Shown here piece by piece: positions 7,054 through 46,025 of a DNA stretch of 64,000 bases. This DNA comes from Bispira polyomma (Eukaryota). The position numbers and the translations under genes are program-made. How positions within the stretch are numbered: the stretch's first letter is position 1; every line of letters starts with the position of its first letter. The stretch spans positions 83,266,001 through 83,330,000 of the forward strand of contig OZ287752.1 of the NCBI GenBank assembly GCA_965649765.1, written 5' to 3'. The notes below the pieces were generated by a model. That model saw only the letters and a program-made list of their open reading frames with translations, ran no database searches and had not been told where the DNA came from.

Positions 7054-7147
7054 CAAGTTTGCTGATTGTCAACTTCTTATAAACAAGCTTACTGATTGTC
7101 AACTTGTTATAAACAAGCTTACTGATTGTCAACTTCTTATCAAGCTT
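7054..7147 (+). repeat. 30-bp tandem repeat, 3 copies
   Basis: CAAGCTTACTGATTGTCAACTTSTTATAAA units starting at 7054, 7084 and 7114. Confidence 0.9.
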
Positions 7148-7413: not shown

Positions 7414-8580
7414 TACAAACCCTTAGTTAACCCCATGTTTACTTAGTCTGAACTTAATTTATATTATCTGGGTCTGATTAATGGACTCCTTTTACCACTG
7501 GATACAAAGAATCTGGAGGATTGACCCCAAAAAGACTTAATTGATCATTAGTAATACACAGCATGCATGTAGTACCATTCAATACTTCTTCATTATCCTT
7601 AACCAATACATGTATATTTATGACACCATTCCATGAATTCTTATAATAACTGGTATAAACAGCACACCAGAGTTAAAACGATTTTGTTTGGAGTTTCAAT
7701 GCATTCCTATGGGAGCATTATTATGTATTACTCGCTGTTGACCCGGATATTCCTCGGAGATAAGCTTGTATTAATACATTCTGTTGTCACATTTGTTATC
7801 AAATCGTGAACAGGCCACTGCGGGGTGTTCTCCGTTGTTTGGGGACCCCGTTCAAATATTGACCTCCGAATCAAGCCTCTATTACGAAAATAATCGGTTC
7901 AATAGGAAAGTTATATTTCCAGTGATTCTTTGTTCAGGTGAAGTTTAGTGCCTTGGCTTCTGGCAATTTGTCTTCCTCTCTCTATTCACTATCACCAGCA
8001 GAAGGCCTTTTTTAATACCTTTGAAATGGGCACCATTAGAACCAAATCTCCTGGAGTATTTCCTGAGGTTAAAAACACGGCTATTAATGGGTGGGTGTCT
8101 GGAATCGCCTGAAAGTCACTGGCGTTTATTGTTGAGTTTTGTATAAGGTGGGGGTATAAAAGGAAAGATTGGTATTTTAAGTAAAGGAAGGTTTTGTGGT
8201 ATTCTTCAAAGTAATAGGAAAGTGTTTGGTATTCGAGCAAATGTTCTTGATATGACAAATCCAAAATACCAGGAATGGTTTTCAGCTATACCACATTTTT
8301 CTTATCCCCAAAATGTCTCCTGGTTTGTTTCAGTTTAACAGTGATACATGGATAGGTGTTTTTTTATTGCAATAAAAAAAATAGTTCTTTCACAATTTAT
8401 GAACACCTCGGCTTTTTACCATTTGGTAATGTAATGTAAATGTGTGCAGGTTTGTAATCCGATATTACGTCTATTGAGGTCTCGGCCAACAATTTACACC
8501 CCCAGCCTGGGTTCTTTCACTTACTTGTTACCAATTGTTCGGTCTCAGCTCCACATACAGCGGGAAAAACTAATGTCCAT

Positions 8581-9673: not shown

Positions 9674-11286
9674 TTGCTTTACTTCTTTTCATGTTCTTGT
9701 ACTGATGATAATTCATATTCAAGTAGATGTACATGTATTCAGCTACCGTTTGTAATTATATTGTAATGACCTTACACGTAGGGCATTGTTGTATCTAGTG
9801 CACGATTGTACAATGCTCGAGTTATTTCCTCAAAACACATGACCTTTTCATCACTATTCATGTGATTTATCTTTTTTTTTCTTTTGTTAAAAAGGGGATT
9901 TTTTTGTTTTAATTACAGTTGTATTGTTTGTAGAAGCTGTTTGTCTTTCTTTAAAATGTAATTGAAGGACAAAGTCTACCCATTGAAGCATGCTTAGTAG
10001 CTAGAGCCAAAAGACTTTATAGGCAAGTGACTGTGAAATGAAGTATCTTGATAATGTATACCATTCTCTGACTCAGTGTGATAACTAGATATAAAAAATA
10101 CTACCCACATAACATTTAAAAGTTGTTTTTTTTTTACTAATTTAATGAACAAACTCCCAATACTTCAGTGTCAACATTTTAAGAGGAGACTAGATTGAAA
10201 AAAAAATTAGTGCACGACTTTGTATGAACTTAAGTCTAGACTTTTATCCGTGTAACCAGAAAACCTTGAGTGAAATATATGGATGTGATCCCATCTGGAG
10301 ATTCTTTTTTGGGGGCATATTCATATATTTGCATCAATGTATGTATGTATGTATGTGTACTGAAGGAGTCGCTTTCTATGTATGTGACTTGTAAATGTCT
10401 GAACAGGGTTATAAATGCATACATTTACAAATTCATGAAGCCTACACTTAACTTCAAACAGTTTTCTGAAAGAACCTAGAATATTAAAATACTAGACCTC
10501 CTTAACATTTCAGCCATCTCATTTACAAACCTGAACTGTCCAGTGAATTTTTCTGTTCATGTATTCATTTCTGCTGCAGTGGAATGGTATATATATTATT
10601 ATTTTTAAGATACTTATTATTCTATTTCAAGATACTTATTATTCTATATATATTTGGAGTTTCAAAAGGTTCTAGTAGGCTATTTCCCTTGCCTTGTTTT
10701 ACATGTTTTAGTAGAATACACAAGACCCCAGTACAACTGTGTATTGCAATGCCCAGAACGGTCATTACTGGTTTGTCTCGCCCTCATAAAAAAAGATTTT
10801 TGCCAGGCGACAGTCCTACTAATCCATTGGCTTTATGTCAGATCCCCTAGATGGAATGATTACCCCATTATTTCAATAGCGTGCCAATTTCATATATGGG
10901 TTGGTCTCGGCAAGTGTACCAGTGGCCATATCCTGATGATGAGAGGGCTTTTTTTGGGTGTGTTATTGGATCTAATGACTCAGTGATATGTACTGGCCTC
11001 TAGTGATGGACTCGTATATGTGGTTATGGTTTGTGTTGCCCTTGTTTGGTCTCTGCTGGTGTCTTGTGGACATCACTAGGACGCACAGCAGATACCTAAT
11101 TATTCTAACAAATATCTCTTAGTAAAACACCCCTTCCTTTTGTACCTCAATTTGTAACAAACATCACCTTTAGATAAACTTGTGTGGACTAGTTTGAACC
11201 GATTTGAATGATCTCTGTTTTAGTGTCTACTGCTTTTCTTCACCAAATGACTTACTACATTTGAAAATGATGTTGATGCACCATCA

Positions 11287-11375
11287 TTAAATTATGAAAC
11301 TCATTGGTCAGCACAAGTTAAATTATGAAACTCATAGCACAAATTAAATTATGAAACTCGTAGCTCAGCACAAGT
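11287..11375 (+). repeat. 26-31-bp tandem repeat, 3 copies
   Basis: TTAAATTATGAAACTC...AGCACAA three times. Confidence 0.85.
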
Positions 11376-27465: not shown

Positions 27466-30400
27466 TCATCAGATCCAACATTTGTAAGTTTCCGCTACAT
27501 ATGCCAGTTGTAAATTAAGTTTTGGAAAAAGAGTAATGTTTTAAGTCCCAATGTGGAGTTGGACTATGGTCTAAATGCCACGCAATCTAACCGTTTTTGT
27601 GGAAAACATCACAGCTTTCAAATAAGGTGTCCTTCAAAGAGGGCAAGTGTTTGGGTGGGGGATTGTCGATATATATAGGTAGCCGGAACTTGTATAGAAT
27701 GATAATGTACAAATCCCTAACTACATGCAGGTCAGGTAGCTTTTAAAGCAATGCTGTCTGTGAGAACGAGGGGGGACTCTGTTCAATAAGAAGCTGTCGG
27801 CAAATGATAGATTCCTCCAACTCTCGTGAGGAGGGGAGGAAGGGGGGGGGGGGGGCGTAAATGAGAAGAAAGTGTTAATACTTTTTCTCAGATGCAAATG
27901 CTCTAACTGTGGAGGGGGAGAGGGGAAGGGGGGTGGGGGGGTGGGGGTGGGGGGGTGCATATCTTAAGTAAAATTAATGGCTGATAAGGGGGAGTGGAGT
28001 GTGGCTTAAATTAAGCCCTAAGAATAAATGCTTTCCATGCCAAGTTTTATTCTTCAAAGACATTTTAGTGTTAGTGATTTTTTTCAGGTTTTTTTGCCTG
28101 TGTTATCCCATTATTATTACACATATCCTTACGGTACCCAACAAATATATATATCATGCTCAGAAAAGCAAGTTAAAGTATATAAATTGTGTAAAAACAA
28201 TTTCTGATCTAGATGAAGCATTAAGGTCAGTAGTCACACACACTCGTTTTGTTTTGGGGGTTCTTTCTTTTCTGTTTTTTTTTTTTTCTCATTTCCTCCT
28301 TAAATAAAATCAATACTCGCACAGTAGCGATTTGTCACCAGGACTTCATATAATGGGTGTTGGTGAGGAGTGGCCACATGTGGGACTAACCCCCTCCCCC
28401 TCCCCCCCCCCCCCTGAGGCTCTAAGCCCACCCTGGAGTGTGAGACATGGGGTGGGGGGGATACAAGTGGCCTCTCCAGATATCATTATAATACAGTGAA
28501 AAGGGACAACTGCCTTGAATTACTCATAACGAGGACTACTTCACACCCACTATTATATGTTTACCCCCTCCTCTAGTTTAGCTACTCATTATTAACAGCT
28601 ACAGATGGACTGCAAAAAGTAGAAAGGAATGTTTTGTAAATCTGCATAACTTCTAAAGTAGTTGGTGTATATTGTATTTCCACGACATTTACTAAGGGTT
28701 GGTGAAAATATATGTCTAAGAATTATAGTGGAGTTCTGTATTTAATTTGACCAATATGGCTTTGAACTGGATAGCCAAATTTAAGTCTATTTGCACTCTG
28801 CATAAATATACAGGTGAAGGTGTGGCAGCAAATGCTTTAGAATCCAAGGATTAGAGTACCATCTTGAAAACCCTTTTTATTTATAAACTACTATGTCATT
28901 GCTATTCACTTAAAACAGGAAAAAAAGATACACTCCCAGGTTGGATTTCAAAGGGAACTGTATCATGTTGCGTGTTTATGTAAGTGAATACAGTAAACAA
29001 ACTGTATATTTTATTTCAGTTATATAGTATTTTTTTCATCATTTAATCCTCCATTTTTTTTGGCTCAGTTGCAGACACTTGTCACTATGTCCAAAACCCA
29101 CCCACTAGTTTTTAAACTCTTCTATATTAAACGTTGTCATAGTCTTCTCACTAGTTCACTATCCTGGATTGAGTTAGCTCTGTTTAAGTCCACAAATTCT
29201 CTTTCCTCAAACAATTGTGTCCGCATGCACATGTTTCTACTTGTTCCTATCAGTGACATATGGAGTCTTTTTAACAATGACTGGCAGAGATTTCCTGATT
29301 TCCTTGATTATTAAGGCTTCTATGAAAGCCATTTTCTAATGAGAATTGACAGTTGACAAATTCCATTTCCTGATAAGCTTAAAACCTTGGTTACTATTAG
29401 TTTTGACTTGGAGATTTGGTTGTTATTGGCAACAGAGGTCACATGACCATATATATATTAGCCAAGAGATACATGTACATACAGATAGAATGGCAGGGAT
29501 ATTAAATTTTCTTTACTAGTTTTCCAATTTGAGATCTACTTTGCTCAGTACTGTAGATATCTATGGTGTTCTATGTATAGAATTTCTGTTTTAGAACAAA
29601 GTTTGTGTCGCTGTTTTCTTTCACATGCTTACCGTATTGCTTCACTACCTGTATTTAGTGATATAGGTGGACATCACTTGAACATGTGAATGTATCATAA
29701 GTGGGGAAAATCTGGCTTGTTTATATTGCGATGGACCACATGTCACAACACTGTAGATTAAATGAGATTACCAGAATTCCTGACCTGATCAATAAGCTAA
29801 AACCCAAGGCTCAGCTGAGAGTTTGGCTTTTGCATTTCACCACTGGACTAGTACAGAGAGAGGCAAGCACAGTATTCATCTGTCTGCCACTATTAATTGG
29901 TCAGCTGTGTGCAGTGGTCAAATATTTACCACAGTTGCTGTGTGTAGTGATCTTTTGATGTAGTAGCTATAGCCACTGTTCTGGCCGGAGTGGCGCCTAG
30001 GATAAATTAGTTTAATTCCACTCCACAAACATATTTACATCTAGAAACTGCAATGGTTGGGTTCAAGGAAACAAAGCCAAATGAGATAGTAAATTGAGTC
30101 CTGTGGCTGTGTGTATATCACTGTGGACTGGCCAGTAAATAGCATTCACAGATTCCCTGAATATCTTTCCACCAGTGATTACAGTTAATTTTGTAGCATT
30201 GCATTCCTGTAAGCAGTGGAATTGGAGGTTTTGTTTAGAGGGAGTTCGGATCTGGTTTTTTTCCTCTTGTTATTAAAATTTAGATTTTCTCTGTTTTGTT
30301 TATGTAGAACTACTTTGTTAAATCCAAAACTACTTTAAATCCTAGGTAAGATAGGAATGATGCTGTAGACTTTGCTATTTCGTACTTATTTTTTTAATCA

Positions 30401-31121
30401 TGGTGTTTTTCTGTTTCATAGAAAAAAGAGACAAGAATATTTATTTTTATCACAGATCAATTTGCATTGTGTGATTTTAAAATATGTCTGCAGATGGTTT
30501 GACAATGTGTTCGCCTGCGTACAAATATTATCTTCAAGTTCTGATCTTGCACAAATGCCATATTCTGAGCTGCGAGTACTAATGAAAATGAATCACAAGT
30601 CTGCCAGACTTAACACCCCCACCCCACTCCAGCCCCCACTTCTCCCCACCCCACTTGTGTGATGTGTAATATTAACCCACCCATGGCTGACTTACTGACT
30701 TCTGCTCACAGGGCTGACAGAAAAAACACCCACAATCCTCTCTGATTACAGACGACAACAGCAATTACTCCAATTATTCCTATTCTAAAGTCCCTGATCA
30801 GGTCTAACCCACTCTTTAAGATTTCAAATGAACTTAAAAACTTAGGTAGACTAATTCAGTAGAACAAAGTCAGATAATGGCTTGTAGTTGATTGGAATTC
30901 CTCTGTACTCAAGTCTTTGATGGAATACTTAAAAGCCTCACATTAGGGATGATAGCTAATTGTTGTGGGGAAGGTGTCTAGTCTTGCTGGAGTCTCAAAT
31001 TTATCACAGTGCCTTATTTCATTTACAAGAATTTCACATACGTATAGACATGTCATTTAGCATAATGTTGACGTTCAAGCATCTTGAGATCTTTTCTTGA
31101 GACAAGTAATCTACTCCCCTT

Positions 31122-31310
31122 TGGCGTGAGCTTCACAGTCACTGTCTCGTGACCAATGGGGGTTTATATCTCTTCGATTTTTTCATGAAGGAAAATTTCC
31201 AGTAATTTCTTTAAGCCATTGGTTTTCAATCCTAAAAACTACTGGTTTCTTCCACCATTGAATCTGGAGGTCGTTATACGACTTAAGCTGTTAAAAGCGA
31301 CCTAAAATCT
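31122..31310 (+). mobile_element. SINE copy (degenerate)
   Basis: ggtttcttccaccattgaatctggaggtcgttatacgacttaagctgttaaaagcgacctaaaa shares the family's 3' body. Confidence 0.65.
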
Positions 31311-33533
31311 GGACTGAATTTTGCAAGGAACTGGAGCGTCAGACCAGGCTAGGGGCGGTCTAGGGCTTGGTGTAATTATTTCTCAGTAATATGACACTAG
31401 ACCAGTGTTACCCAGGAGATGATCAGATATATATATATATATACCCAGCTGCTAAGGCAGTAATTGCTGTCCTGTATACACTGTTACTATGGTAAAGAAA
31501 ACACAAGCAACACACCCTCCTCCCCCTCAATTATCTCATCCTCATGGAGCTCTCCACAGTGGTCCTTGTTTAAAGATTGTGGCTTGAACCTAAATAAAAT
31601 AAATAAAACAAGGGATATAGGAGTCCATTAAGGAATAATTTGCCCGTTAAAAGGTGTATGGCAATGATTTTAAAATTTAAAGTCTTTTAATATCCCAGAT
31701 ATTCTGATATAGAATGTAACAATAAACACCCTAAAGTTCATGCTGCTGGTGTATAGACTGTGTATCAACTGTAGAAATGAAGCCAGATTTCAGAAAATGA
31801 GGACATGTAGTAAAAGAGATAGGAATGGATTCTCTTCCCCAGAGACGTTTGAATTCCTGTCTATATACGTAAAAAGTGGTACAGTTCCCCAAGGCATACA
31901 GAAATATATCACTGGTAGAGATTCTGCAGGAGCTAGCGAATAGCTTCACTATTGTGGTCAACCATTGTTAAGTCATATGAAAATGACAAGTACATAAATA
32001 TTGAGAAACAAATATTGGAAAAATTACATAAAATTTTTAAAAACTATAAATGAAACATAATCTTAATACTGTTCTGGAAAGCTAATATTGCATTCAAGCA
32101 ATCGAGTACAAAACCATTAATATTATATATGGTCTTTTATTCGTTTATTAGTGGGGTGTAATTATATGAAAAAAAAATACAACCGTGGCTTAGTCTTTTG
32201 TTCGGAATGTGTCTCTTGGTGCAAGTGTGTTGAAGGTTTTTTGATGTTTTTCATACCAAATTTGCTCAAGCGTTAATATTGGTTGATTGTTTAATTTGTG
32301 AGGTTTATCACTTGCTGAAATCTCTCGAATTGTGTGCCGTCTCAAATTTCTGCATGTTGGCAGAACCAACCAATAAGAGCTGATAAAACGTGGAACAAAA
32401 GTCTTTTATTTCTAGTTATTGGAGAAGTTGGACAGAGAAAGCAGAGACTGATAAGCAATCTTATCCACTGGTCTTAATGAATTAAATAATCTTTTTTCTG
32501 TGTTAATTTGAGCATGTGTGAAAACATTGATTATTAGTCATAACACTTTATGAAAAAAATGACTAAATATTCACTCATGAAGACTTGGTTTCTTTGTTTA
32601 GTTATAACCGTATAACCGTTATAACCGTAAAACGTACGCCACCGTCTTTCTGTTTTACTTTTTCTCTGGCCAGGCAATAGGATTTTCACCTATTTTTCAT
32701 TGTTTTTATGACTTAATTGGAGTAATTAGTATATTGTAAAGTGTCAGATTAAGCTGACTAGATCTGTGTTTCTGATAACCTCCTTATTACTCGTATATAA
32801 TTGTAATAATCTATAAATCTCTAGCAGCCATTGTATATACACCTCTATATTCCCCACTGAGTGACAGATCTGTAGAGTTAGAAAGTTTATATTTAGCTCT
32901 AGAGATCTAAGATTTCATAAATTGGGGGAAACTCAACCTGTAAGATATCCTGATTGAGCAGATGAAGTTATCAGTTTATTACACAGAGCTGCAGAAATTC
33001 CTATAAGCCTTTCCATCAACAACTTCCAAATGCCTCTGGGCCATTTGCTGCTCAGGAGCTCTCAACAACCAGTGAAAAATGTCATGAAGGAAAGTTTTTA
33101 ACCTTCTCATTTTAAATATATATTGACATATAAAAATAATACATTGGCCCGGAGGTGTTTTGGCCAGTAGAACGGTTTTATGTAGAACAGGGTATCTTTT
33201 TAATTAAAATGATGTTTTACCAGAGTGGTATTATGATAAAACTGGATGCTTTAAGGCAAAGATTGGGTTCTGCAAAATTTGCAAAACAAAAACCACACAG
33301 TAATCTTTCAAGCTTGGTTTTGTATGTTATTTGTTAGTTTGCAATTTTTTATCATGAATTAATTTGGAGTCCATGATTTCATAGGGTTGGTGTGAAAAAT
33401 GAGCAAGTCAAGAAAATCCCAAGAGGGGAAAAGTATTAACAGGAGGCGGCAATTGTGTAAGAACTTTTGCTAATGGAAAAAAACCCAACTTTATTTATAT
33501 GAAAGAAAATATTGGGATAGAAGTGTTAAGGAA

Positions 33534-33592
33534 TAGTTCATTATTTGTAGTGGGGGGGGGGGGGGGGACAGTTCATTATTTGTAGTGGGGGG
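33534..33592 (+). repeat. Duplicated AGTTCATTATTTGTAGTGGGGG with an expanded poly-G
   Basis: Two copies; the first G run is about 16 nt. Confidence 0.75.
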
Positions 33593-33869
33593 CATCTATC
33601 AAATGTTTGCTGTCTTGTAATTCTAGTGTAGCCTGTTTGTCCAACAGATGTTAAAGCAATGGATTTGGTAGTAATGTTTGCAAGTGTTATCAGATTTATC
33701 AGAGGCTTTTACCTTTACAGTTTAGTGAATGTAGTGGCATCTTTGGTACAGAGACAGAAAACCTTGTCCTTGTATCTGTAGATTGAAGTTGTATTATATT
33801 GTTTTTAGTGCCCCCATACAGAATCGCTAAATATTACACATGCTTCAATTTTAATAGTCGGTTTAATAG

Positions 33870-34008
33870 TGTATTGTATGAACTCACTCACACTCTGCAG
33901 CGTTATACAGCCTCGTTTTTGATTGCACAGCACTGGTTTTTTGACCATTCAATCTGGCAGTCGTGATGATGACCTAAGCTGTTAAAATCGATGTAAAACC
34001 GAAATAAA
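33870..34008 (+). mobile_element. SINE 3' fragment
   Basis: accattcaatctggcagtcgtgatgatgacctaagctgttaaaatcgatgtaaaacc. Confidence 0.6.
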
Positions 34009-34860
34009 TTTTAAAAAAAATTCTCCTTTTATAAACAAACGCTCAGTCATTCAAACAAAGGCGTGCGCGCTGCCCAGACATTTAGATAAAAGAGGTTCCA
34101 CTGTATTATAACTACAACAATGAAGTCTGTAAAATATGAAATACTACATAGATATCACAGTTCTCTAAAAGATGTGTGAATTGACTACTTAGACCTGTAT
34201 ATTCTGTATTATCAGATCTCCTACTAAAAGTTTTGGATGGACAACAGTTTAACTTCTAATTTAGTGTCTTAAGTTTGACTTTTTTGGGTAATATTTTAAT
34301 ATTTAAGGTTGTAATCGAAAGGTTTCAATTGTTGTACTGCCTTTCATCTTTTTTAACCAACCTTGACAGGAAAACTTTGTTAGAACCAAAAGAAAGTTTC
34401 TATGGTTTCAGGCGATGTTTTCCGGCAAGGTAACTTTTCATTTACCAATCGCTGTGTAAAAACATAGGAATCGTGGGGAAAAGGAGAAACAGTATCATTG
34501 CTCATGTGATAGTTGATTTGCTGCGAGAATGGTAGTACCAGGATTGGCCAAATCTTCTATAGGATTTTTGACAAGACTTGTCAGTGGGGGATTCCTCTGG
34601 ATCTAATTTATGTGTGCTTTTATGTAGGCCTCCACTATCCACAGTGTTTCTTCATGTCATTGTTCTGGCATCTGGATGGCTACAATGCCATTGAAATTTA
34701 TATGGCATGTAAACTGTAAACCAACATTTGTAACACAGGTTTCTGCTCAATAGAGCAAACAAAGTGTTTAGAGACAAAGTCAAGTTTTAAATGCAAACAT
34801 ATATTACTGACTTGGATATTGTAGTGGTTTGTTTTATCTCACAAATATGCTTTACAAATA

Positions 34861-35017
34861 CTGTAGAACCTCTATTATCAGAACTTCTTTGTGATGTGAA
34901 TATTCAGTGTATTACTCTCCCAAATTGATCTTTTCCTAATGTCTTGTACTGAAATACCTCTTCTATTTTATGAAACCTTCTTTTATCCAAACAAACTCTT
35001 ACATGTTCAGATAATAA
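34861..35017 (+). mobile_element. MITE family A copy upstream of the robo exons
   Basis: TA|CTGTAGAACCTCTATTATCAGAAC...ctcccaaatt...atacctcttctattttatgaa...gttcagataata. Confidence 0.75.
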
Positions 35018-36785
35018 CCACAGATTGCAGTTGATTTTTTTCTGTGTAGTTACTACTTTTCATCATTTCAGCCCCAGGTTGATTGCTAGTAAATATATAA
35101 ACATACATACATGTAAATACAAGATATGGTACACTACCCAACCCAAGTATGTATATATAATCTAGAGGATTTTCTCTTCTATCTTGGCCCTGGTTAATTG
35201 AGGAAATGGAACACTTTAGCTTTTGGTGGTATATTTTGTTGTTTTCTGTTTCAAGTGTGATAAATGAAGTGTTGACCATAACCTTCCTCTCACTTGGAAG
35301 CAGATAACATCCACCAGTTGCTCTCTCTGTTGTACATGTACATATAGAACTGGTCTTCCAGTTAAGTGTACTTCTGTATCACTCTGCTTAGGTCTAGGTA
35401 AATATACACAGCTAATCACTGCAATAGCCCAATAGTCCTGCTGTATCTCCTCACACTTGTTGAAAGTCCAATACACAAAAGCCTCCTCTTCCAGAGGGGG
35501 TATTAACCATGTTTATAAACTATTCACTGACCAATTAACTCTGGCAGAATAACAAGTGATATGACTAAGATAAGGTCTGTCATTGTCCTCATCCATAAGG
35601 CTGGCTGAAAGCTTTAGGTAAATATTTGGTACAAGATGGACAGTTCTTCTGGCAATGTTTTGTCTGTAGTCATGGGCTTGGTATTATTTACAAAGTATCT
35701 TAAAAGGGGTTTTCTTACATTTACCGAAATTGCAAAGGGTACCTGTATTTAAACCACTGTACCAATACTACTGCTGTATCACCCTAGATATATATATATA
35801 AATTTGACAAATTTACTACAATCTTTCTTTAATAAGTTTCCTGATTGATCTAAAGAACGTGAGCATTATCTGACCTCAGAAAGAATGGCTTGGTTTTGCA
35901 GCAATTTTTTCAACACCTATTTGGGGTGTTACATTAGCCATATCTCTAGGATACACGGATGTATGGATAAGCATTATATTTGTCACAATCTGTTCTGTGC
36001 ATCATTTACCTGTCAATGCAAAAACTGTTTGACAAATGATAAAGCTGCCTTAGTATCTTTAGACATCCTATGTAAAGAGATACATTGATAGATATATATA
36101 TTAAAATTCATCTTCTTAAGTTCAGCATGTTAAAGTTTTATCGTCAATGGTTGCACTCTTCATCCTAGATGAAACATAAGAACAGACTAAGTATGCTTTA
36201 TTAAGTTTGTGTCATTGATGTTGTATTGGTGACTATGTCATCTGTGGTATCGCCTTACATTATTAATATGAACCAGTGCCTTTATTGCCACCTCATCTGC
36301 TGTAATACCATACATACTTCGTCAGTCCATTGATGGCTTCCCAATATGACCTACCCTTAATATCACAGCGAGATAGGGTGACTGACGTTGACTCAGTACC
36401 GATATTTCTGTGTCTATTTGTATACTTCATAAACCAGTGGCACACCTTATTCTCTACAATAGCCATATACACTTCATCTGTCTTTCGATTCTTTCAGAAC
36501 CCTCTTCTCGTCTAACAGGTAACAGCATTTGTTATTCTTAGGAACCCATGTTTGCAAGCAGAGGGCCTGGCCAAAATTATTACTTTGCTCTCCTTGAGTA
36601 CCCGTGCATTGCAATACGTTAGTACTGCAGAATTATATGTTTTAAAATATCCCATAGAAAGCTGTCCAGAAATGCCGGCAGTTTTTTGTGGGGTATGTTT
36701 TAGGGACTCCAGCCAGCTAAAACCTGCTTAACATTGTCCAGTGGTGAAAGTGTTGTATAACCAATCAATATGTATGTATTTGTAG

Positions 36786-37015
36786 CTGTGGAGCCTGAGA
36801 TCACTGATCCCCGTATTGTGGAGCATCCAGAAGACCAGTTTGTGGTGAAGAATGACCCGGCCACACTGAACTGTAAGGCGGAGGGTAACCCGCCACCGGT
36901 CATCACCTGGTACAAAGACGGAGAGCTAGTGACCACCTCCCACAACAACCCTTCATCTCACAGGATGATGTTACCTGGTGGTCACCTGTTCTTCTTGAGG
37001 ATTATACATAATAAG
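36786..37015 (+). CDS. robo: Roundabout (Robo) receptor, internal coding exon: N-terminal part of Ig1 (230 nt, phase 1 to phase 0)
   Basis: Acceptor tttgtAG (36784-85), donor AAG|GTAAGT (37016). Translation [76 protein letters not shown] matches the Robo1/2 Ig1 pattern [29 protein letters not shown]......SHRMLLP.G.LFFLRI.H, recognised from knowledge of the family. Confidence 0.95.
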
Positions 37016-37959
37016 GTAAGTGATGTTACCTGGCGGTCAGCTGGTCTTCTTAAGGATTATACATAATAAGGTAAGTGATGTTACCTGGCGGTCACCTGTT
37101 CTTTTTAAGGATTATACTTAATAAGGTGAGTGATGTTCCTGGCGGTCAGCTGTTCTTCTTGAGGATTATACATAATAAGGTAGGTACCTTGATCATGGTA
37201 CCTGGCGGTCAACTGTTCTTCTTAAGGATTATACATAATAAGGTAAGTGAGGTTACCTTGAGGTGAACTGTTCTTGATGAAGGATTATACATAATAAGGT
37301 AAGTCAGGTTACCTTGAGGTGATCTGTTCTTGATGATTATACATAATAAGGTAAGTCAGGTTACCTGGCGTATCACAGAGAATATATGGCGGTCAGCTAT
37401 TCTTCTCAAGAATTATACATAATAAGGTGAGTACCTTGATGATGTTTCCTGGCGGTCAACTGTTCTTCTTGAGAATTATACATATTAAGGTAAGTGATGT
37501 TACCTGGTGGTCAACTGTTTTTCTTGAGGATTATACATAAGAAGGTAAGTCTCTTGATGATGTTACCTGGTGGTCAACTCTTATTCTTAAGGATTGTACG
37601 TAATAAGGTAAGTACCTTGATAATGTTACCTGGCGGTCAGCTGTTCTTGAGGATTATACATAATAAGGTAAGTGATGTTACCTGGATGTGAACTGTTCTT
37701 CTTAAGGATTATACATAATAAGGTAAGTTCCTTAATGATGTTACCTGGTGGTCAAATTTTCTTGAGGGTTATACATAATAAGATAAGTACCTTAATGATG
37801 TTACTTGAGGTGAACTGTTCTTGAGGATTATACATAATAAGGTAAGTGAGGTTACCTTGAGGTGATCTGTTCTTAAGGATTATACATAATAAGGTAAGTA
37901 CCTGGAGGATGTTACATGGCGGTCAAGTGTTCTTGAGGATTATACGTAATAAGGTAAGT
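36964..37959 (+). repeat. Minisatellite of 17 units (52-76 bp) made of the robo exon 3' end plus its 5' splice site
   Basis: Consensus GATGTTACCTGGYGGTCARCTGTTCTTCTTRAGGATTATACATAATAAG|GTAAGT(ACCTTGAT). Donor positions: 37016, 37071, 37126, 37180, 37243, 37299, 37351, 37427, 37490, 37545, 37608, 37668, 37723, 37783 (mutated to AT), 37842, 37894, 37954. Confidence 0.97.
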
Positions 37960-40134
37960 TAATAGTTAAATCATGAATAGGCTTTGTGTACTGGATTATG
38001 GGTGTTTGGTACGAAGTTTTAAATTGATTACTTGATTGCAAAAAATAAGAGATAAATACAATTTTGATAGAGAATAGCCTGTTTTAAATAAATATGGACT
38101 TGCTATTTTTATATAATGTAAAACTTGCTTGTCTTTTTATCTTCCAACACATCTCTTATAGGATATACATTGTATTTATCAATTCTTTAAAAAAAAAAAA
38201 AACAAGTACTAGGAAAACACCACCCAAGTATATATTCTCTGTGATGTCCCCCTAATGTAATGCGATAACTAGGAGTACACAAAATTCTGACAGCTTAAAT
38301 GGCAGGGCTGGGTGACAAAATTGAAAGACTCGATCTGTCTGGCGCTTAATAGACTGTGTAATAATATCTAATCGCTGACAAATAGAAGAACCCAAGTACT
38401 TGTCTCATGTTAGTGTTGTTTTTGCATTATCATTATTATTCACACTATGAATTGATAGAAGGTTTTCGATTGAACAGATAGCATTGAGGTGGGAAGAGAT
38501 TAAAGGGCTGTGGTGTCGGCCACCTTTTGAACATTGCACAGACTTTGAGCCAACTCGGCTCCTCGCTGTCACTTGCATTTGGGTGGAGGGACTGTAAGGC
38601 GCACAGGGTTTTTTATTGACACTATGCAAATATTTTGAATTGGTGTGAAACTTTTGTGTAAGCAAGAGGTGGAGTTTGAAACTTTTGTGTAGTTTGTGTG
38701 TGTAGAAAAGAATGGTGTAGTCAATTAAGGTCCTAAAGAGAATGTGTTTTTTATGTAATACTGTAGTGAGATCTCTATTAAAACTATATTATTGTTATAT
38801 TTAGTGGACACGTACATGACCTTCGGTGGTGGTTCATTACTAAGCGACTGCATGTAGCATTTCATTGGTAATAATTATGCACGGGATATAATTGATATTT
38901 TTTGGTATTTGTGTGAATCGATCAGTTTTATCAAGGGGCCGGCTTGATAACGAGCGTATTGTATTTGCCAATAGATCAGTATTTGGCAAACTATACAGAT
39001 GTCAGTTATAACGATAAGGTCAATAAACATGTCATTTCTGTCATTTTGAATTATGTTGACATTATGAGGACCACCAGTTTTGTACAGAGAACCAAGGACT
39101 GTTGAGATGGGTTAAGATGATAAACTTTTAACCGAACAGTGTCAAGTGAGAGAGAGTGGTGGTGCTATGCAGTGTATGGTTAAATACAAGCCCATCCTAG
39201 ATTGGTGACAGGGTGTGTAATAAAACCACAATCTCATCTAGTTGAGCTCCACTTAAAGATGATAGGTGGATAATATAAATGAGAACATTGTAAACTACTG
39301 CACTCTAGATAGAAATGATGGGCTACAGGAAAATTAAACCATTTTGGAAATTTCAAGGAGTTTTCACTAGAATATATTTAGATGGTCACTATTGATCCTT
39401 TGTGGCCAAAATAATAAAACAGATGTTTAATTTTTTAATCATAATAAATTGTCATTATTTAGACTTGTTAAGTTAAAATGGCTAAATCATATCCCAGAGA
39501 ATCTCTCTTAACCTATTTGTAGGTAATCAGTTCCGTTTCCATAAGGTTAGAGCTGATGTTATCCTGTATTTCTATAGCAAGTTGTCTATGCTGATTCTAT
39601 GACTTTCCCTGGTCAGTAATATCTTAATGTTTCCCTGTACCTGATACTTACCGTAAGCTGTCACTTCCCCCCACTCCTGTGGATTACCCCACCATTGGCT
39701 ATCTGGTTGTAGACATTACATGTAACAATGCATAATTATATAACATGAATTACAAATGCATTCTGCTTTCAAACTCCACCCTAAAATTTGGTATATGAAA
39801 TCGGTAATTACTTACTTACTTATCCTTTTTTACTCTATGTGGAGTATAAGGCCTCATCTACAAACTTTCCCCACTCAGAAACTTTTTTCAGATCTTTCAG
39901 CTCATAATGTGGACTGATGTACAGTTCTTCTGCATCTTAGTGCCATTTTGGGAGTTCTTCCACTTTCCATCAGTCCACATTATGGGTTATGGGTTTGTTT
40001 GACAATCTGCAGGATCAAAACAGAGTCTCGTTAATACTCATTTCTGTCATAGGTATACAAAGCTTAAATACACAGGCGTAAAGTTATTTTTACATTGAAA
40101 CATTGTACATTTTATGGTTTGTGTGTTTGTATAG
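37016..40134 (+). other. robo: Phase-0 GT-AG intron of robo (3119 nt) splitting Ig1
   Basis: GTAAGT at 37016 and TAG at 40132-34. Splicing joins HNK|NQKPD in frame. Confidence 0.88.
39808..39862 (-). mobile_element. Probable 3' tail of an RTE-like LINE or a SINE it mobilises
   Basis: Minus strand: gatgaggccttatactccacatagagtaaaaaaggat followed by an (AAGT)n tail, resembling RTE-clade 3' ends. Confidence 0.45.
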
Positions 40135-40231
40135 AACCAGAAGCCAGACATCGGTGTGTATTACTGCAATGCTACCAACACTGAGACTGGTGTGAGTGTC
40201 ATCAGTAGGAACGCTACCTTAAAAATAGCAT
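40135..40231 (+). CDS. robo: Roundabout (Robo) receptor, internal coding exon: C-terminal part of Ig1 (97 nt, phase 0 to phase 1)
   Basis: Not in the ORF track. Acceptor gtttgtatAG (40133-34), donor T|GTGAGT (40232). In frame with the previous exon it reads NQKPDIGVYYCNATNTETGVSVISRNATLKIA. This supplies the D.G.Y.C motif (second Ig cysteine) and the S.NA.L..A end of Robo Ig1. Confidence 0.92.
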
Positions 40232-40324
40232 GTGAGTACAAACAACACCAACAAACACTGCTAACCATTGGTATACAAACTTCTGATATCTGATGTCCAA
40301 ACCTCTGTCCTCTGAATGTAGTAT

Positions 40325-40500
40325 ATGTAGAACCTCTATTTTGCAGACAATTCAGGAGAGTGAGGATTGTTTGGATAATAGAAGGTTTGTAAATTAGAAG
40401 TGGCATTTTAGTATGAAACCTAGCAAAAAATAAGTTTGGGAGAATGAAATTGAGTCCGTAAAATCGAATACAAACATCACAGAACTTGATAGAGTAACTG
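40325..40500 (-). mobile_element. MITE family A copy just downstream of the second robo exon
   Basis: TAGAACCTCTATTTT...ttgtttggataatagaaggttt...aagtttgggagaatgaaattgagt; reverse orientation relative to the 34861 copy. Confidence 0.7.
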
Positions 40501-41415
40501 AAACAAAATTGAGAAGACAAAAAGTAAATAAAACGTTCCAGATTTAAACTATTCTCCCCTATATAAGACCTCTACACTGAGAAGACCACAGATGCCCTTC
40601 TGTTTGATTTATTTATAAAGTTTTTTGTTGGTAGTTGAGGTCAAAGCTTTAGTATTTTCTATAAAACACTGGTTTGGGCCTGTGTGTGAAGTTTCAGTTT
40701 GTTCTAGGAAGTCCCTAATGAGTCCACTGTCTGACATCAGGGGATTAACCTTTCTTTGTACAGTCTCTGCAGAGTCAGAACATTATCAGTTTTTGTCTTA
40801 ACCACTGAAATATTTCACTTGAAAAGCTCTGGTTTTTATATTGCCAGCTGAGTACACTTTTCTCAATATGCAGCGTCTACTCACCTTAAATTCACACTTG
40901 AACTGCGACTTAAATCTAAGTGCTTCCTCTACGTCTGCCTCCAGAATTTAAGATTTTTAAAATAGGATTTCAGCTTTGGATCCAGTATTAAATGCCCTAG
41001 GATTAGAAATTAGTATAGATTCCTCTGCCAATATTTCTAAAATGTTCAAATCCCCCTCTTTTGATTGTAAGTATCAGTTTGTGTTTTGAGTGAATTTTTG
41101 AGAATTTGAGGCCTAATGTAAGAAGGATTTAAGCCCAAAAAACGAGCCAACGTGGTATTAGGCAGATAGCTTTGGTTTTATCCTAATGCCAGAATTAGCT
41201 TGAATAAGATTTAGCATCTATCATCCATTTAAAAAATCAAAAAAATTCAATTGTAAATACAATTTTGTGGCATCTATGAACGTAACATTTAGGTTCTACA
41301 ATGACTTTAACAAGTCTTATTATAATGCCATACATTCGAGATGGACCTAAGTCTTAGTGCTATTATTATCTTAAAGTAAAACTTTACTTTATTTCCTTCA
41401 AACATTCTAAAACTG

Positions 41416-41438
41416 GTGTGTGTGTGTGTGTGTGTGTG
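41416..41438 (+). repeat. (GT)n microsatellite
   Basis: About 11 GT units. Confidence 0.9.
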
Positions 41439-41774
41439 ATAAAAAATAACAAGCAAGTAAAAGTGTGATGAATGTGTTTGTTGGACCTTGTTGTAAGTTG
41501 GTTCTACAACTGTGCAAACAGGCCATGTGTGTGCTTCTTGTACCATACTCTAACCATTAGGTTTAAGGCCCTCTAATCTTTGACTGCATCTATCTACAGT
41601 CTAAGGTGTTTATGGGGGAGGTAAAGTAGATTGGCCCCGCAAAATTGGATATTTAAATAAGTACAAAGAAATTTGATAATAATCTTTGTATATTTGATTT
41701 GATGAACACACTTTTACCCCTCCTAAATGAATGTTTTTTTCCTAGTTTCACACCTAAAATGCTTTCTTCTGTTA

Positions 41775-41839
41775 CATGGACTTGCTATTATCCCAAGTAA
41801 ATATTACTCCCGCAAGATGTTCAGATAATAGAGGTTCTA
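41775..41839 (+). mobile_element. MITE family A fragment
   Basis: ctattatccc...gatgttcagataatagaggttcta. Confidence 0.5.
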
Positions 41840-42382
41840 AGAGCTTGTTATATCTGTATTCTATTGACAAATTTGTCCAACATTGTCTTAACATTATTGC
41901 CTTTTGGAATTTTGAAGTGTATATTGAACCTGAACCTCTTTTTCTCAGGTTAACCAAGTAAGGCTAAAAATCTAGTCAAATAAATACATGTAACTGGCAA
42001 TGCTCGTTATGACTGCTCTGAATTTAACATCTGTGTTAATGGTAATTTAAGTAATAGCCTTTAAAAATTAGTAGAACATTTTGGGCAGGCAGTGAATGAT
42101 TATTGTTCAATTTTGTAAAAGTGCTGACTGATAATAAATCGTATTATTGATGGATGTTGAGATTTTCCGGCTAAGTTGAAAGTTTTGTTTGAATTATACC
42201 TGTCAGAAATACTCCCATCGTCAGTGTCATGTCCAAAACCACTTTAAGGAGTGTATACTGCTAGCCTTGCATAAGGCCCACGTTTGTACCTAGCCCTGCT
42301 AACCAGACTTGTAACGTGTTTCTTGTAAACTAAAGAAACATTTTTTAAATGTTCAAAAGTCATTTTGACTCTACAAAACTTT

Positions 42383-42600
42383 AGTTGGGTTTAATGATGT
42401 TTAAAACAGCTCAGATCATATCAAGACAGCCAGATTTAATGGTGGAAGATCACAGTGCTGGAGCACTGTACAATCACTGACCTACAGGAAGTACCTCACA
42501 AATTTTCCCACCTGAAGAAACAATGGTATTTGAGCTCACATTGTTTGAGAGGCCAGTGATTGTGGAGTGAACACTTCTGACTACTGGACCGCCGTGGCTC
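42383..42600 (-). mobile_element. tRNA-derived SINE copy
   Basis: Colinear with 61940-62137: ggtttaa...aacagc...catatca.ga..gccagatt.aatggtggaa...caaa.tttcccac.tgaag...gaggccag.gattgtg. Confidence 0.75.
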
Positions 42601-43898
42601 TTTTTAAAACTTTAAATCGATTTTTCTGTGGCCATCGATTTTCGAAAGATTTCTTGTCAAGAAATAGTCATCTCTGTATTTATTTAACAAAGTAGTAGAG
42701 ACCAATGAAAAAGACATTGGCGCTTTGGTTTGGCTAATACCCCACTCACCTAGACTTTACCCATGCATTAGCTTCCTGATAAAAAATGGCCATCCAGTAA
42801 TACTCAAAAAAATAAATAATATTTAGTTTTTCAGTGTCGGGAGAAAAGAGGGTTTTTTTGAAAACTTAATGCTGAACATGTCTGAATGAAAGGTCCAGGT
42901 AGTGTGTTTATTAGACAGGACAACAGTGGATGCAAATAACTCCTGTTGGTGGAACTCACAAGTCACAATGGAATTGCAGAGAAACTCTGTCAGATATTTG
43001 GTGTTTATAATAGAATTTGGGAAGGGAATGAGTGATAAAGGTTACTGGTGGTGGTCCGATTCAAGGGAATACCTTAACAGTCAAAGAACATTGATAGAAA
43101 CCTAGTTTTCATCATTAAAAATTATGTAAATAAAAATATGTCAAAGCTGTTTTATACCAGTTCTTGCGTTTAATAGATTTGCTTAAACTAAACAGAATTA
43201 TTGTGCAAGGTTTCAACAGGTAAAAAAATTGACAAGGCAGTTTTAACTTGTTTGAGTAGAATCTTAAACTGATCATGTTTTTTTGAGCAGACAGTTACTA
43301 GTCCCAAGTCAGTTTTGCAGCCAAGGATCATTGGAGACTTGTTGAAATGTCTGGAATGATATGCCACCAACGTGTCACAGATAAAGAGGGAATGCTAGTC
43401 ATTTTTTTTTCACAATAATGTGGAGGTAGTTTGTACACACATCTTGTTTCTATACATACATCTACACCTCATTGTTCTTGTCTAATATTTTTGTGAAGAA
43501 CTGTGTCTACCAGTTGTCCTAACTGGTTACCTTTAAACCCTGAAGTGAACAATGTGTCTGTTGCCAGAAACTCTGTTATAACTGGTTGAGTAGGAAATCA
43601 CAAATTTTGGAAGATATGTGATATATATGTTCATAAAATTGAATGTTCACATAATAGAAGTTTGGCTTGTGTAGGATCTAGTTATCAATATTTTGGACAG
43701 AATACAGGACATAGTTGACTTGTACAATGTCTATTATTACATTTAACTAAAAACACCTTCTCATCAGCTGCTAAAACTGTAGCATTGATATCTTGGAAAA
43801 GTGTCAACAATCAAAAGTGGGATTGGTAGAAAATTGCAAAAAGCTAGGCCCAGGCCATCAGTTGTAGCCACTCCTACACTTTAGTTCATGTCCAGTGT

Positions 43899-44130
43899 GG
43901 CCGTATTAGAAAAAGATCTTAAGCTCAACTCAGACTCAAGCTAAAATCTCTAGTCCCAACATCTCTAGCTAGAGTAAGTTTAAGTTAAATCTGATTGCAT
44001 ATTTGAATTCGGTGCTGATGGCTCTTGTAAAATTAACGGTCACAAGTATAGGTTTATTCCATGTAGAAGGACTTTCCATACATAGAACCTTTATTTGAGT
44101 GGAGTGTGAGTTTGGTTTAAAAATACAGGC
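43899..44130 (+). mobile_element. MITE family E copy
   Basis: ggccgtatt...catatttgaattcgg...ggtcacaagtataggtttattccatgta...aaatacaggc. Confidence 0.62.
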
Positions 44131-44247
44131 TCTGCTCTTTTGTATGAAAACCAGCCAAGTATTTTCAGTCGTCTGTGATAGGTTAGTAGTAGGTAGGTCC
44201 CTGATGGAACAGATTTGATAAAACCAGTAAGTGGTTCTGGTAATGAG

Positions 44248-44475
44248 GTGGAATCCCCTATTATCCAAACAGAGAGAGAGAGAGAGTGAGGTTGTGTTTG
44301 TGTTTGGATAATAAAACACTGATAAAGTAGAAAGGGCCATTGTTCGGTTTCTTTTTGCCTGGTTAGTTATTGTCCTACAATCGTAGGTATAAACCATATG
44401 TAAATCTAAACTTCAGGGTGGGTTAAAAAGGTGAATGTTTGGTTGATAGAAGTTTAGATAAGAAAGGTTACACTG
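44248..44475 (-). mobile_element. MITE family A-related copy containing a (GA)n tract
   Basis: gtggaatcccctattatccaaac...tttggataata...tttagataagaaaggttacactg. Confidence 0.5.
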
Positions 44476-45846
44476 CAGATGACATTTAAAAAGGACAACC
44501 ATTTGACTCGATTAGTTGGACTTGTATGATATTTACTTGAGATTTTAATCTTAACTTTTATGGTATTTGCTAAACATTTCCATCTTTAAACAGAGAACTT
44601 TATTGATTGAATGGATTGTCTATATCTCTTTTCTTTTTGTGAATTCTTCTTTTGTGTTATAAGAGACAGTGTGTTTTGTGTCAAAAGTTCTTAAACCCAT
44701 TTTACTCGACAATTTATTGCTTCCATTTAGACCTTTCTAACTGACTTGAATGTATAGCTTTGCTTTCATAACAACATGTTTGTAGATCTTGTACACAAAG
44801 GTTGCCCCTGTATCTAACGGTACTTTCATTTTGGATATTGCTCAAGTAAAAGGACATAAAGCACATTTCACTGACATTTTTATATTTCTGAGGTCAAAAC
44901 ATACCATTTGAAGTTAATGTTAAAAGTCATGGGCCATTGAAATTTGAAGACTTTAGAAGTGTTAAAAGTTTGTTAGGAAAATTTATTATCTTTGGCAAGG
45001 TTAAATGTGTGTGAGGAGTAAAGAATTAAAAATCTACCAACATATCGGACATTGGCTCTCATAATAATACATAAATCTGAATAAATAGAAGAAAAACAAA
45101 ATAAAATGACACTGTGTGAAAATGGGGAAAGTTTTAGACAGAAATGCTTTGTTATGAAGTTCAACGATAAAGATAATTATGGGATGGTGATTTTAGATGT
45201 GTGGCATGTTTTACCTGCTTTACTGTAATGTAGACCTGAGAAGTGTGGAGACTTGTAGTGGTGGTTTTATAGAGTGTGTTTATTTTGTATATATTTACAG
45301 TAGCCTTTGTTTCCTTGTCTATCCTGGTTTTTTAAAATGTTTTTACATCAGTGATATCAATCTTATCGGGCAGTAACATCGCACAATTTGGACATCCATC
45401 CATCCTGCCCCAGCATCTATCTGGCAAGGACAGAGAGAACCTGTATCAAGAGGTACCATCACAGATCGTGGTCATCAACCTTTGCCTTCTGGTTTAGTTC
45501 ACATTTTTTCAGAAGAGCTACTTTTTCCAAGGATTGTTTTAAAAAGAGGGATCCTCTTATACACAATCTATGTATTAACAGAATAATAAAACTTCAGTGT
45601 TCTCAAAGTATATGAAAGATATCTTTTACATGTGCCATCTGATTAAATTGTGAAATAGTAAGATACCTTAATATATTAAGACATTCTTGATGAGTATATA
45701 CAAGCTAGTCTTACTTATTAATATCATCATGTTTATGATAAAAAAATTACACAAAAAACTTTTAACTCAAATGCATAATAAAAAAATTATCGGATGGTCA
45801 CTTTAATGAGAATGCAGGGATTTCATTTAAAACAGTTAATTTAAAA

Positions 45847-46025
45847 CAGAACCTCTATTTTCCAAAGTTCTATTATCCAAATATTCAATTTGATGAACTT
45901 AGTTCTACTCTCCCAAATTTATGTATTCCTATTGTTTTGTACAGAAATGTATCTTCTGCTTGATGAACCTTCTATTATGCAAACAAAACCTTTCACAACA
46001 TGTTTGGTTAATAGAGGTTTGACTG
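45847..46025 (+). mobile_element. MITE family A copy
   Basis: Closely parallels 408-594: agaacctctattttccaaagttctattatccaaatattcaattt...taatagaggtttgactg|TA. Confidence 0.8.

Follow-up and report, generated by a model that had tools for sequence, protein, structure and literature searches.

Why does a coding exon of a Robo gene run into an intron that opens with sixteen further copies of the exon's own end, nearly all of them carrying a strong 5′ splice site, and which of these donors does the gene use? To answer this, we analyzed the surrounding 64-kb stretch of DNA (hereafter the window, to whose positions all coordinates refer). The exon (36786–37015, + strand, acceptor AG at 36784–36785) encodes the first part of the Ig1 domain in 76 full codons; its best PDB hits were ROBO2 and ROBO1, and it scored 95 bits against the Ig1 domain. 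The next Robo exon (40135–40231, + strand), searched separately, supplies the rest of Ig1 in 32 codons plus 1 nt and ends at a phase-1 donor at 40232. Its translation is 72% identical to the residues of a molluscan Robo that directly follow those matched by the first exon. The closest named proteins were molluscan Robos, and the motif after the exon junction is lophotrochozoan, unlike that of Branchiostoma or Ptychodera. The intron between the two exons is 3119 nt long. Beyond the repeats it consists of unique sequence (37960–40134, + strand) with 35% GC, as against 51% in the Robo exon, and with eight AATAAA/ATTAAA hexamers. No further Robo exon was matched in the 23.7 kb downstream. A very-high-copy repeat begins at about 40360, ~130 nt past the second exon, where the summed contig depth is several hundred times that of the flanks.

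The original prediction described 17 tandem copies of the exon end with its donor, and its positions, spacings and donor types were all reproduced. Donor-like sites lie at 37016, 37071, 37126, 37180, 37243, 37299, 37351, 37427, 37490, 37545, 37608, 37668, 37723, 37783, 37842, 37894 and 37954, at spacings of 55, 55, 54, 63, 56, 52, 76, 63, 55, 63, 60, 55, 60, 59, 52 and 60 nt. Of the 55 nt in the basic unit, 49 are the end of the exon and 6 belong to the intron. Copy 1 (36967–37021, + strand) is the exon end itself with the authentic phase-0 donor, whose GT is at 37016–37017; copies 2–17 (37022–37959, + strand) form an intronic minisatellite with units of 52–76 nt, each made of exon-derived sequence and a 6-nt donor. 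About eight extra nucleotides stand at the start of eight units, and more in unit 8. Thirteen donors read GTAAGT, two GTGAGT and one GTAGGT, and copy 14 (37783–37788, + strand) has lost its GT to AT, so that GT is retained at 16 of the 17 sites, namely copy 1 and 15 of the 16 intronic copies. The computed U1 duplex energy of the copy 14 site is −5.3 kcal/mol, compared with −10.6 to −12.1 kcal/mol for the other donors. All 13 AGGTAAGT octamers on the + strand of the window fall inside the array, which obtained TRF scores of 498 and 548. The copies match copy 1 at 43–52 of 55 positions. The claim that a block of ~21 nt next to the donor is the best-conserved part held for this array (9 alternative alleles in 21 columns versus 42 in 34 columns elsewhere, p = 0.0013 with the boundary set post hoc), with the qualification that conservation extends into the exon-derived part: the exonic segment from −15 to −4 is about as well conserved as the donor.

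An Rfam search of window positions 30000–46000 gave no match, and no similar copy of the unit was found elsewhere in the genome by a search that can miss repeats. Three short tandem repeats in the window (7054–7140, 8169–8234 and 11286–11375), of two to three copies of 26–31 nt, contain neither splice motif nor exon and represent ordinary background. The 5′ end of U1 snRNA reads TTACCTGG. The Leu-Pro-Gly codons of the exon spell the same sequence (36969–36978, repeated at every unit start), and this identity is probably a coincidence. Every donor in the array but the last has its own complement downstream, which makes a 6-bp hairpin possible.

Copy number, which the original prediction proposed to compare across individuals, differs between two samples. 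A contig of 382 letters from run X1, two of them other than in the assembly, shows a substitution at 37323 and 4 nt inserted after 37334. Deleting unit 7 (37305–37356, + strand) from the assembly reproduces this pattern exactly, and sample S1 is therefore most likely one unit shorter than sample S2, in which unit 7 is present.

The history of the host intron bears on that of the array. In a relative (L052), the orthologous exon is 75% identical in nucleotides and 80% identical in protein sequence, a counterpart of the second exon is present, and an intron of 593 nt with a weaker donor, GTTGGT, lies at the same place. Among the homologues compared, the intron at 37016 is common only to this relative. 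The junction was read without an intron in all 34 other homologous fragments, and the five that we fetched were exons in genomic DNA, each flanked by an acceptor and a donor of its own. Because these fragments read through, the intron appears to be a lineage-specific gain. No repeat array was found in the orthologous intron of the relative, the single one compared, at 75% exon identity. Since that intron exists without the repeat, the array is, most simply and on the evidence of this one relative, younger than the intron and dispensable for it.

Splicing at 37016 preserves both the frame and the length of the intronless homologues. Any later donor would give a different product: copy 2 contains an in-frame TAA (37064–37066, + strand) that is included by each of donors 2–17. 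These donors consequently truncate Robo within Ig1, and donor 1 alone leaves the frame open. The original prediction had the spliceosome choosing among 16 near-perfect donors. The equality of the sites stood, as the computed U1 pairing of the 15 later donors is as good as that of donor 1, and the predicted unpaired probability is highest at donor 17 (0.68, versus 0.27 at donor 1). The choice itself is probably narrower, since human F7, with a comparable array, uses its most upstream donor (PMC1557585), and other choices here lead to a stop codon. By frame and by this analogy, donor 1 at 37016 is presumably the donor used.

The copies also preserve a record of the exon. The codon at 36983–36985 (−33 to −31 from the donor) specifies His in the live exon and Gln in 34 of 34 homologues and in L052; the His arose recently at a position of Robo Ig1 that is otherwise conserved, and the array dates it. 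Ten of the 16 intronic copies carry the Gln codon while copy 3 alone carries His. The array is thus old: it was founded before the Gln-to-His change, and at least one unit was later exchanged or copied anew. Across 15 arrays of this genome, the live exon differs from three or more copies in 46 cases, 28 of them at third codon positions (p = 1.5 × 10−4), whereas changes seen in just one or two copies are spread evenly over the three codon positions (49/38/48). This is the pattern expected if purifying selection acts on the exon while the copies are free to mutate, and it points to neutral decay of the copies. Identity to the exon declines with distance in the Robo array (rho −0.51, p = 0.045); over 13 arrays such a gradient was not significant (p = 0.11).

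To place the locus in its genome, we searched the 1.04-Gb assembly for three copies of a motif spaced 35–65 nt apart, with the reversed motif as control. Triples of AGGTAAGT numbered 999 versus 223 in the control, those of AGGTGAGT 4091 versus 326, and those of AGGTATGT 1148 versus 238; the acceptor motif TTTYCAGG gave 449 versus 152. Donor-motif arrays were thus ~5 to 12 times commoner than their reversed-motif controls, whereas single AGGTAAGT octamers were only 1.28-fold over control. As triple matches overlap inside long arrays, loci are the better unit: a 108-Mb contig (C1) holds 25 AGGTAAGT loci, compared with two for a control with G+1 changed to C. A control with G+1 changed to A gave 403 matches, a number inflated by one dispersed repeat family. 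Among the first 20 AGGTAAGT loci, 15 (14 of them independent) start at the end of a coding-exon-like open frame, and Pfam matches were obtained for six of ten tested exons (peptidase C78, ankyrin twice, EGF, NopRA1 and DUF7042). The remaining five comprise three copies of one dispersed repeat and two loci with no evident exon. The genome-wide enrichment of repeats at splice sites, for which the original prediction proposed a test, was therefore borne out against reversed-motif controls, with 15 of 20 sampled loci beginning at an apparent exon end. Extrapolation from C1 suggests ~180 exon-anchored arrays genome-wide for AGGTAAGT at 35–65-nt spacing, and ~300 loci each for AGGTGAGT and AGGTATGT, exon anchoring having been counted for AGGTAAGT loci only.

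Several features of the class were observed in passing. A dispersed repeat family (L035, L041 and L047) has three AGGTAAGT octamers ~50 nt apart that are not tandem and lack an evident exon. Donor-motif arrays of more than 2 kb, with 40 to 70 units, occur on C1 at 31.201–31.204 Mb and 53.087–53.089 Mb; the AGGTGAGT count is strand-skewed (2750 versus 1341), which implies some much larger arrays elsewhere in the genome. At four loci (L034, L044, L048 and L049), the 3′ ends consist of partial, donor-less units; the original intron start is no longer visible in those arrays, their distal ends having apparently been eroded by deletion. An array is common to duplicated genes in two cases (L044/L046 at ~42.40 and 42.70 Mb of C1, and C1 20.21/81.28 Mb). 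Such arrays may be older than the gene duplications and could be used to date them.

The unit ends of these arrays are not placed evenly. A gapped comparison of the intronic share of units showed that 10 of 15 arrays have at most eight intron bases per unit, where even placement expects 1.2 (p = 2 × 10−8); this bias was measured on 15 arrays with one donor motif, on one chromosome arm and against a simple null, and eight of the exon calls lack a Pfam match. In eight of those ten, sequence matching the exon already starts within the final bases of the donor. Such an overlap suggests that one or a few bases of microhomology were involved, that the search motif favored breakpoints immediately before +6, or both. 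Because selection alone should not favor short intronic parts, the likeliest account is that duplication breakpoints are linked to the donor region and that events harming the exon or the first donor are subsequently lost. We would go further only tentatively, at rather less than an even bet, and propose that in this animal the 5′ splice site is a hot spot of short tandem duplication that is coupled to splicing or transcription, has its 3′ breakpoint at about +5 to +8, produces arrays at perhaps a few percent of donors and leaves a dated exon record beside hundreds of genes. The zone from +5 to +8 would correspond to the edge of the U1 pairing region, and candidate causes include polymerase pausing, U1-bound nascent RNA, the edge of an R-loop or nucleosome, and G+C-dependent growth of exon-rich units. 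A hairpin was considered as a general cause and rejected: TTACCT, within the Leu-Pro codons of the exon, can pair with the donor here, but the folding z-scores do not stand out, and across the 15 arrays inverted repeats of this sort exceed chance only marginally (p = 0.058).

There may also be no hot spot at all, with minisatellites arising wherever sequence is richer in G+C and selection leaving those that straddle splice sites. We consider this unlikely, though it has points in its favor: the exon is richer in G+C than the intron by the margin given above, the control motif counts reveal many unrelated minisatellites in this genome, and arrays inside exons must be removed by selection. Random placement would, however, yield an even intronic share rather than ten of 15 units with eight bases or fewer; an effect of G+C would skew that share, but a pile-up at the minimum requires a steep one.

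Taken together, we favor the reading, at a probability of about 0.72, that the Robo array is a donor-type 'mirage' minisatellite, the name given to such boundary repeats in amphioxus, with no function of its own and tolerated as a by-product. A short tandem duplication would have copied the exon end with six intron bases, and the duplicated pair would then have expanded and contracted by slippage or unequal exchange. The array would be tolerated because splicing uses the most upstream donor, which is intact, and an occasional choice of a later donor would run into the stop codon and lead to nonsense-mediated decay. The copies would decay neutrally while retaining older states of the exon. In the genome at large, splice sites would act as hot spots for such duplications, and purifying selection would spare only those arrays directed away from it into the intron. 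The suggestion that the array is a product of a process amplifying exon–intron junctions thus gains support, as the class is genome-wide and known from elsewhere as mirages.

A selection test over 13 arrays ranked the donor octamer among those other octamers of its unit that would pass the same search. The pseudo-donors showed no excess conservation across these arrays (mean rank 0.50, p = 0.92), a test with limited power against weak selection, and the proposed conservation of the donor above the rest of the unit was therefore not upheld for the class; in the Robo array alone the rank is 0.82. Some observations run counter to a mere by-product. The 21 nt on the donor side are better kept here, at the post hoc p value given above, and GT survives in 15 of 16 copies. 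The array has also outlasted one amino-acid change in the exon. Furthermore, the F7 result was obtained in mammalian cells, and the human genes CBS and IFI6 do use some downstream sites (PMC1557585).

As a rival reading, the array may have begun as a by-product but now tune Robo output, with later donors competing with donor 1 and diverting transcripts to nonsense-mediated decay in a proportion set by copy number. The U1 pairing of the 15 later donors, the stop reached from all of them, the variable copy number between samples, the predicted openness of donor 17 and the downstream sites used in CBS and IFI6 (PMC1557585) are all compatible with such control. Nevertheless, we regard it as improbable: pseudo-donors lack excess conservation across arrays, the relative has no array, the F7 pseudo-sites are silent (PMC1557585), and no aberrant transcripts were found for amphioxus mirages (PMC3087553). 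The first two of these points likewise leave the original idea of a copy-number-based splicing control unsupported.

Slightly less probable still is a U1-loading platform, in which extra donors aid exon definition or suppress premature polyadenylation. Strong donors in 15 of 16 copies, the conserved donor-proximal block of the Robo array, the eight polyadenylation-type hexamers in the intron remainder and the 23.7 kb downstream with no further matched Robo exon would suit it. However, protection from premature polyadenylation was proposed for a gene with very long introns, and the host intron is only 3119 nt long. Donor 1 is already strong, and L052 does without an array although its donor is weaker. 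Amplification also affects acceptors, to which U1 does not bind, and is just as marked for GTATGT donors that pair imperfectly with U1; the pooled conservation rank of 0.50 again gives the platform no support. An assembly artefact is close to refuted: although no single contig from the public runs covers the whole array, three runs on two samples yielded contigs that together cover the unit junctions exactly, with no differences except the one unit missing from S1, the units diverge by 5–22% and by indels, and the copies hold an ancestral codon that is missing from the live exon.

A single array of this kind is ordinary; the interest lies in the scale of the class in a new lineage and in how unit ends cluster at the donor. 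We found no publication that counts such arrays across a genome or analyzes their breakpoints, most subscription papers lying outside the search. The unit ends just past the donor provide a clue to how such repeats start, and the arrays offer hundreds of natural tests of how the spliceosome chooses among identical donors. As they keep earlier exon states, here the ancestral Gln, they can date and polarize substitutions without an outgroup. On the practical side, gene prediction and read mapping in this genome will be led astray by splice-site arrays.

Several known systems were compared with the locus. Exons of the Dscam type are tandemly duplicated and mutually exclusive, and share with the Robo array the repetition of exon-derived sequence with donors in a gene for an Ig-domain receptor. 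A mutually exclusive cluster was rejected here, as the copies comprise only the last 49 nt, bring no acceptor with them, are frameshifted and contain stops, and their private changes are even across codon positions. Recursive-splicing ratchet points join an acceptor directly to a donor within a very long intron. The units do read AG|GT, but their pyrimidine run comes from the exon, most units have a further AG 16 nt upstream, and the host intron measures 3.1 kb. In the Rogers model, introns are gained by tandem duplication (PMC3087553, PMC2812944), and the host intron is likewise lineage-specific, absent from the 34 homologous fragments and present in L052. Birth of the intron from the array was rejected, since the L052 intron has no repeats and the intronless homologues read AAG|AAC or similar rather than AG|GT.

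Closer counterparts are the human donor-spanning VNTRs in F7 intron 7 (37 bp), CBS intron 13, IFI6 (6-16) intron 2, LMNB2 and PDGF intron 4, in which the first unit holds the authentic donor, 4–25 pseudo-donors follow and copy number is polymorphic (PMC1557585). The Robo array shares this arrangement. In F7, the pseudo-sites are functional, yet only the most upstream donor is used, while two further donor sites are used in CBS and IFI6 (PMC1557585). Donor use was measured in F7 and is predicted for the Robo array, and the F7 unit has 4 exon and 33 intron bases compared with 49 and 6 here.

The closest match is provided by the amphioxus mirages, which are tandem repeats over an exon–intron boundary with units of 10–160 bp and haplotype length differences (PMC3087553, PMC3902484). 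They were described in Adh3, the globins BflGb6 and BflGb9, troponin C and PGBD5 (PMC3087553, PMC3902484), with somatic instability reported for Adh3 (as cited in PMC3087553). Their origin was called unclear (PMC3087553). All the structural features of mirages that could be tested are present in the Robo array: the terminal unit lies over a real exon–intron boundary, the Robo Ig1 exon end, and boundary copies run into the intron; units are both exonic and intronic, carry a splice signal in most cases and fall within the published minisatellite range (52–76 nt); and length differs between S1 and S2. Both donor and acceptor types occur in amphioxus and in this genome. The differences are in host and scale. 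The host Robo Ig1 has a lophotrochozoan motif that is not amphioxus-like, most donor units here end no more than 8 nt past the exon, and the published mirages concern a handful of genes, whereas here the class was counted genome-wide at hundreds or more. Mirages, so far a curiosity seen in a few genes of amphioxus and human, thereby become a genome-wide feature of a further animal lineage.
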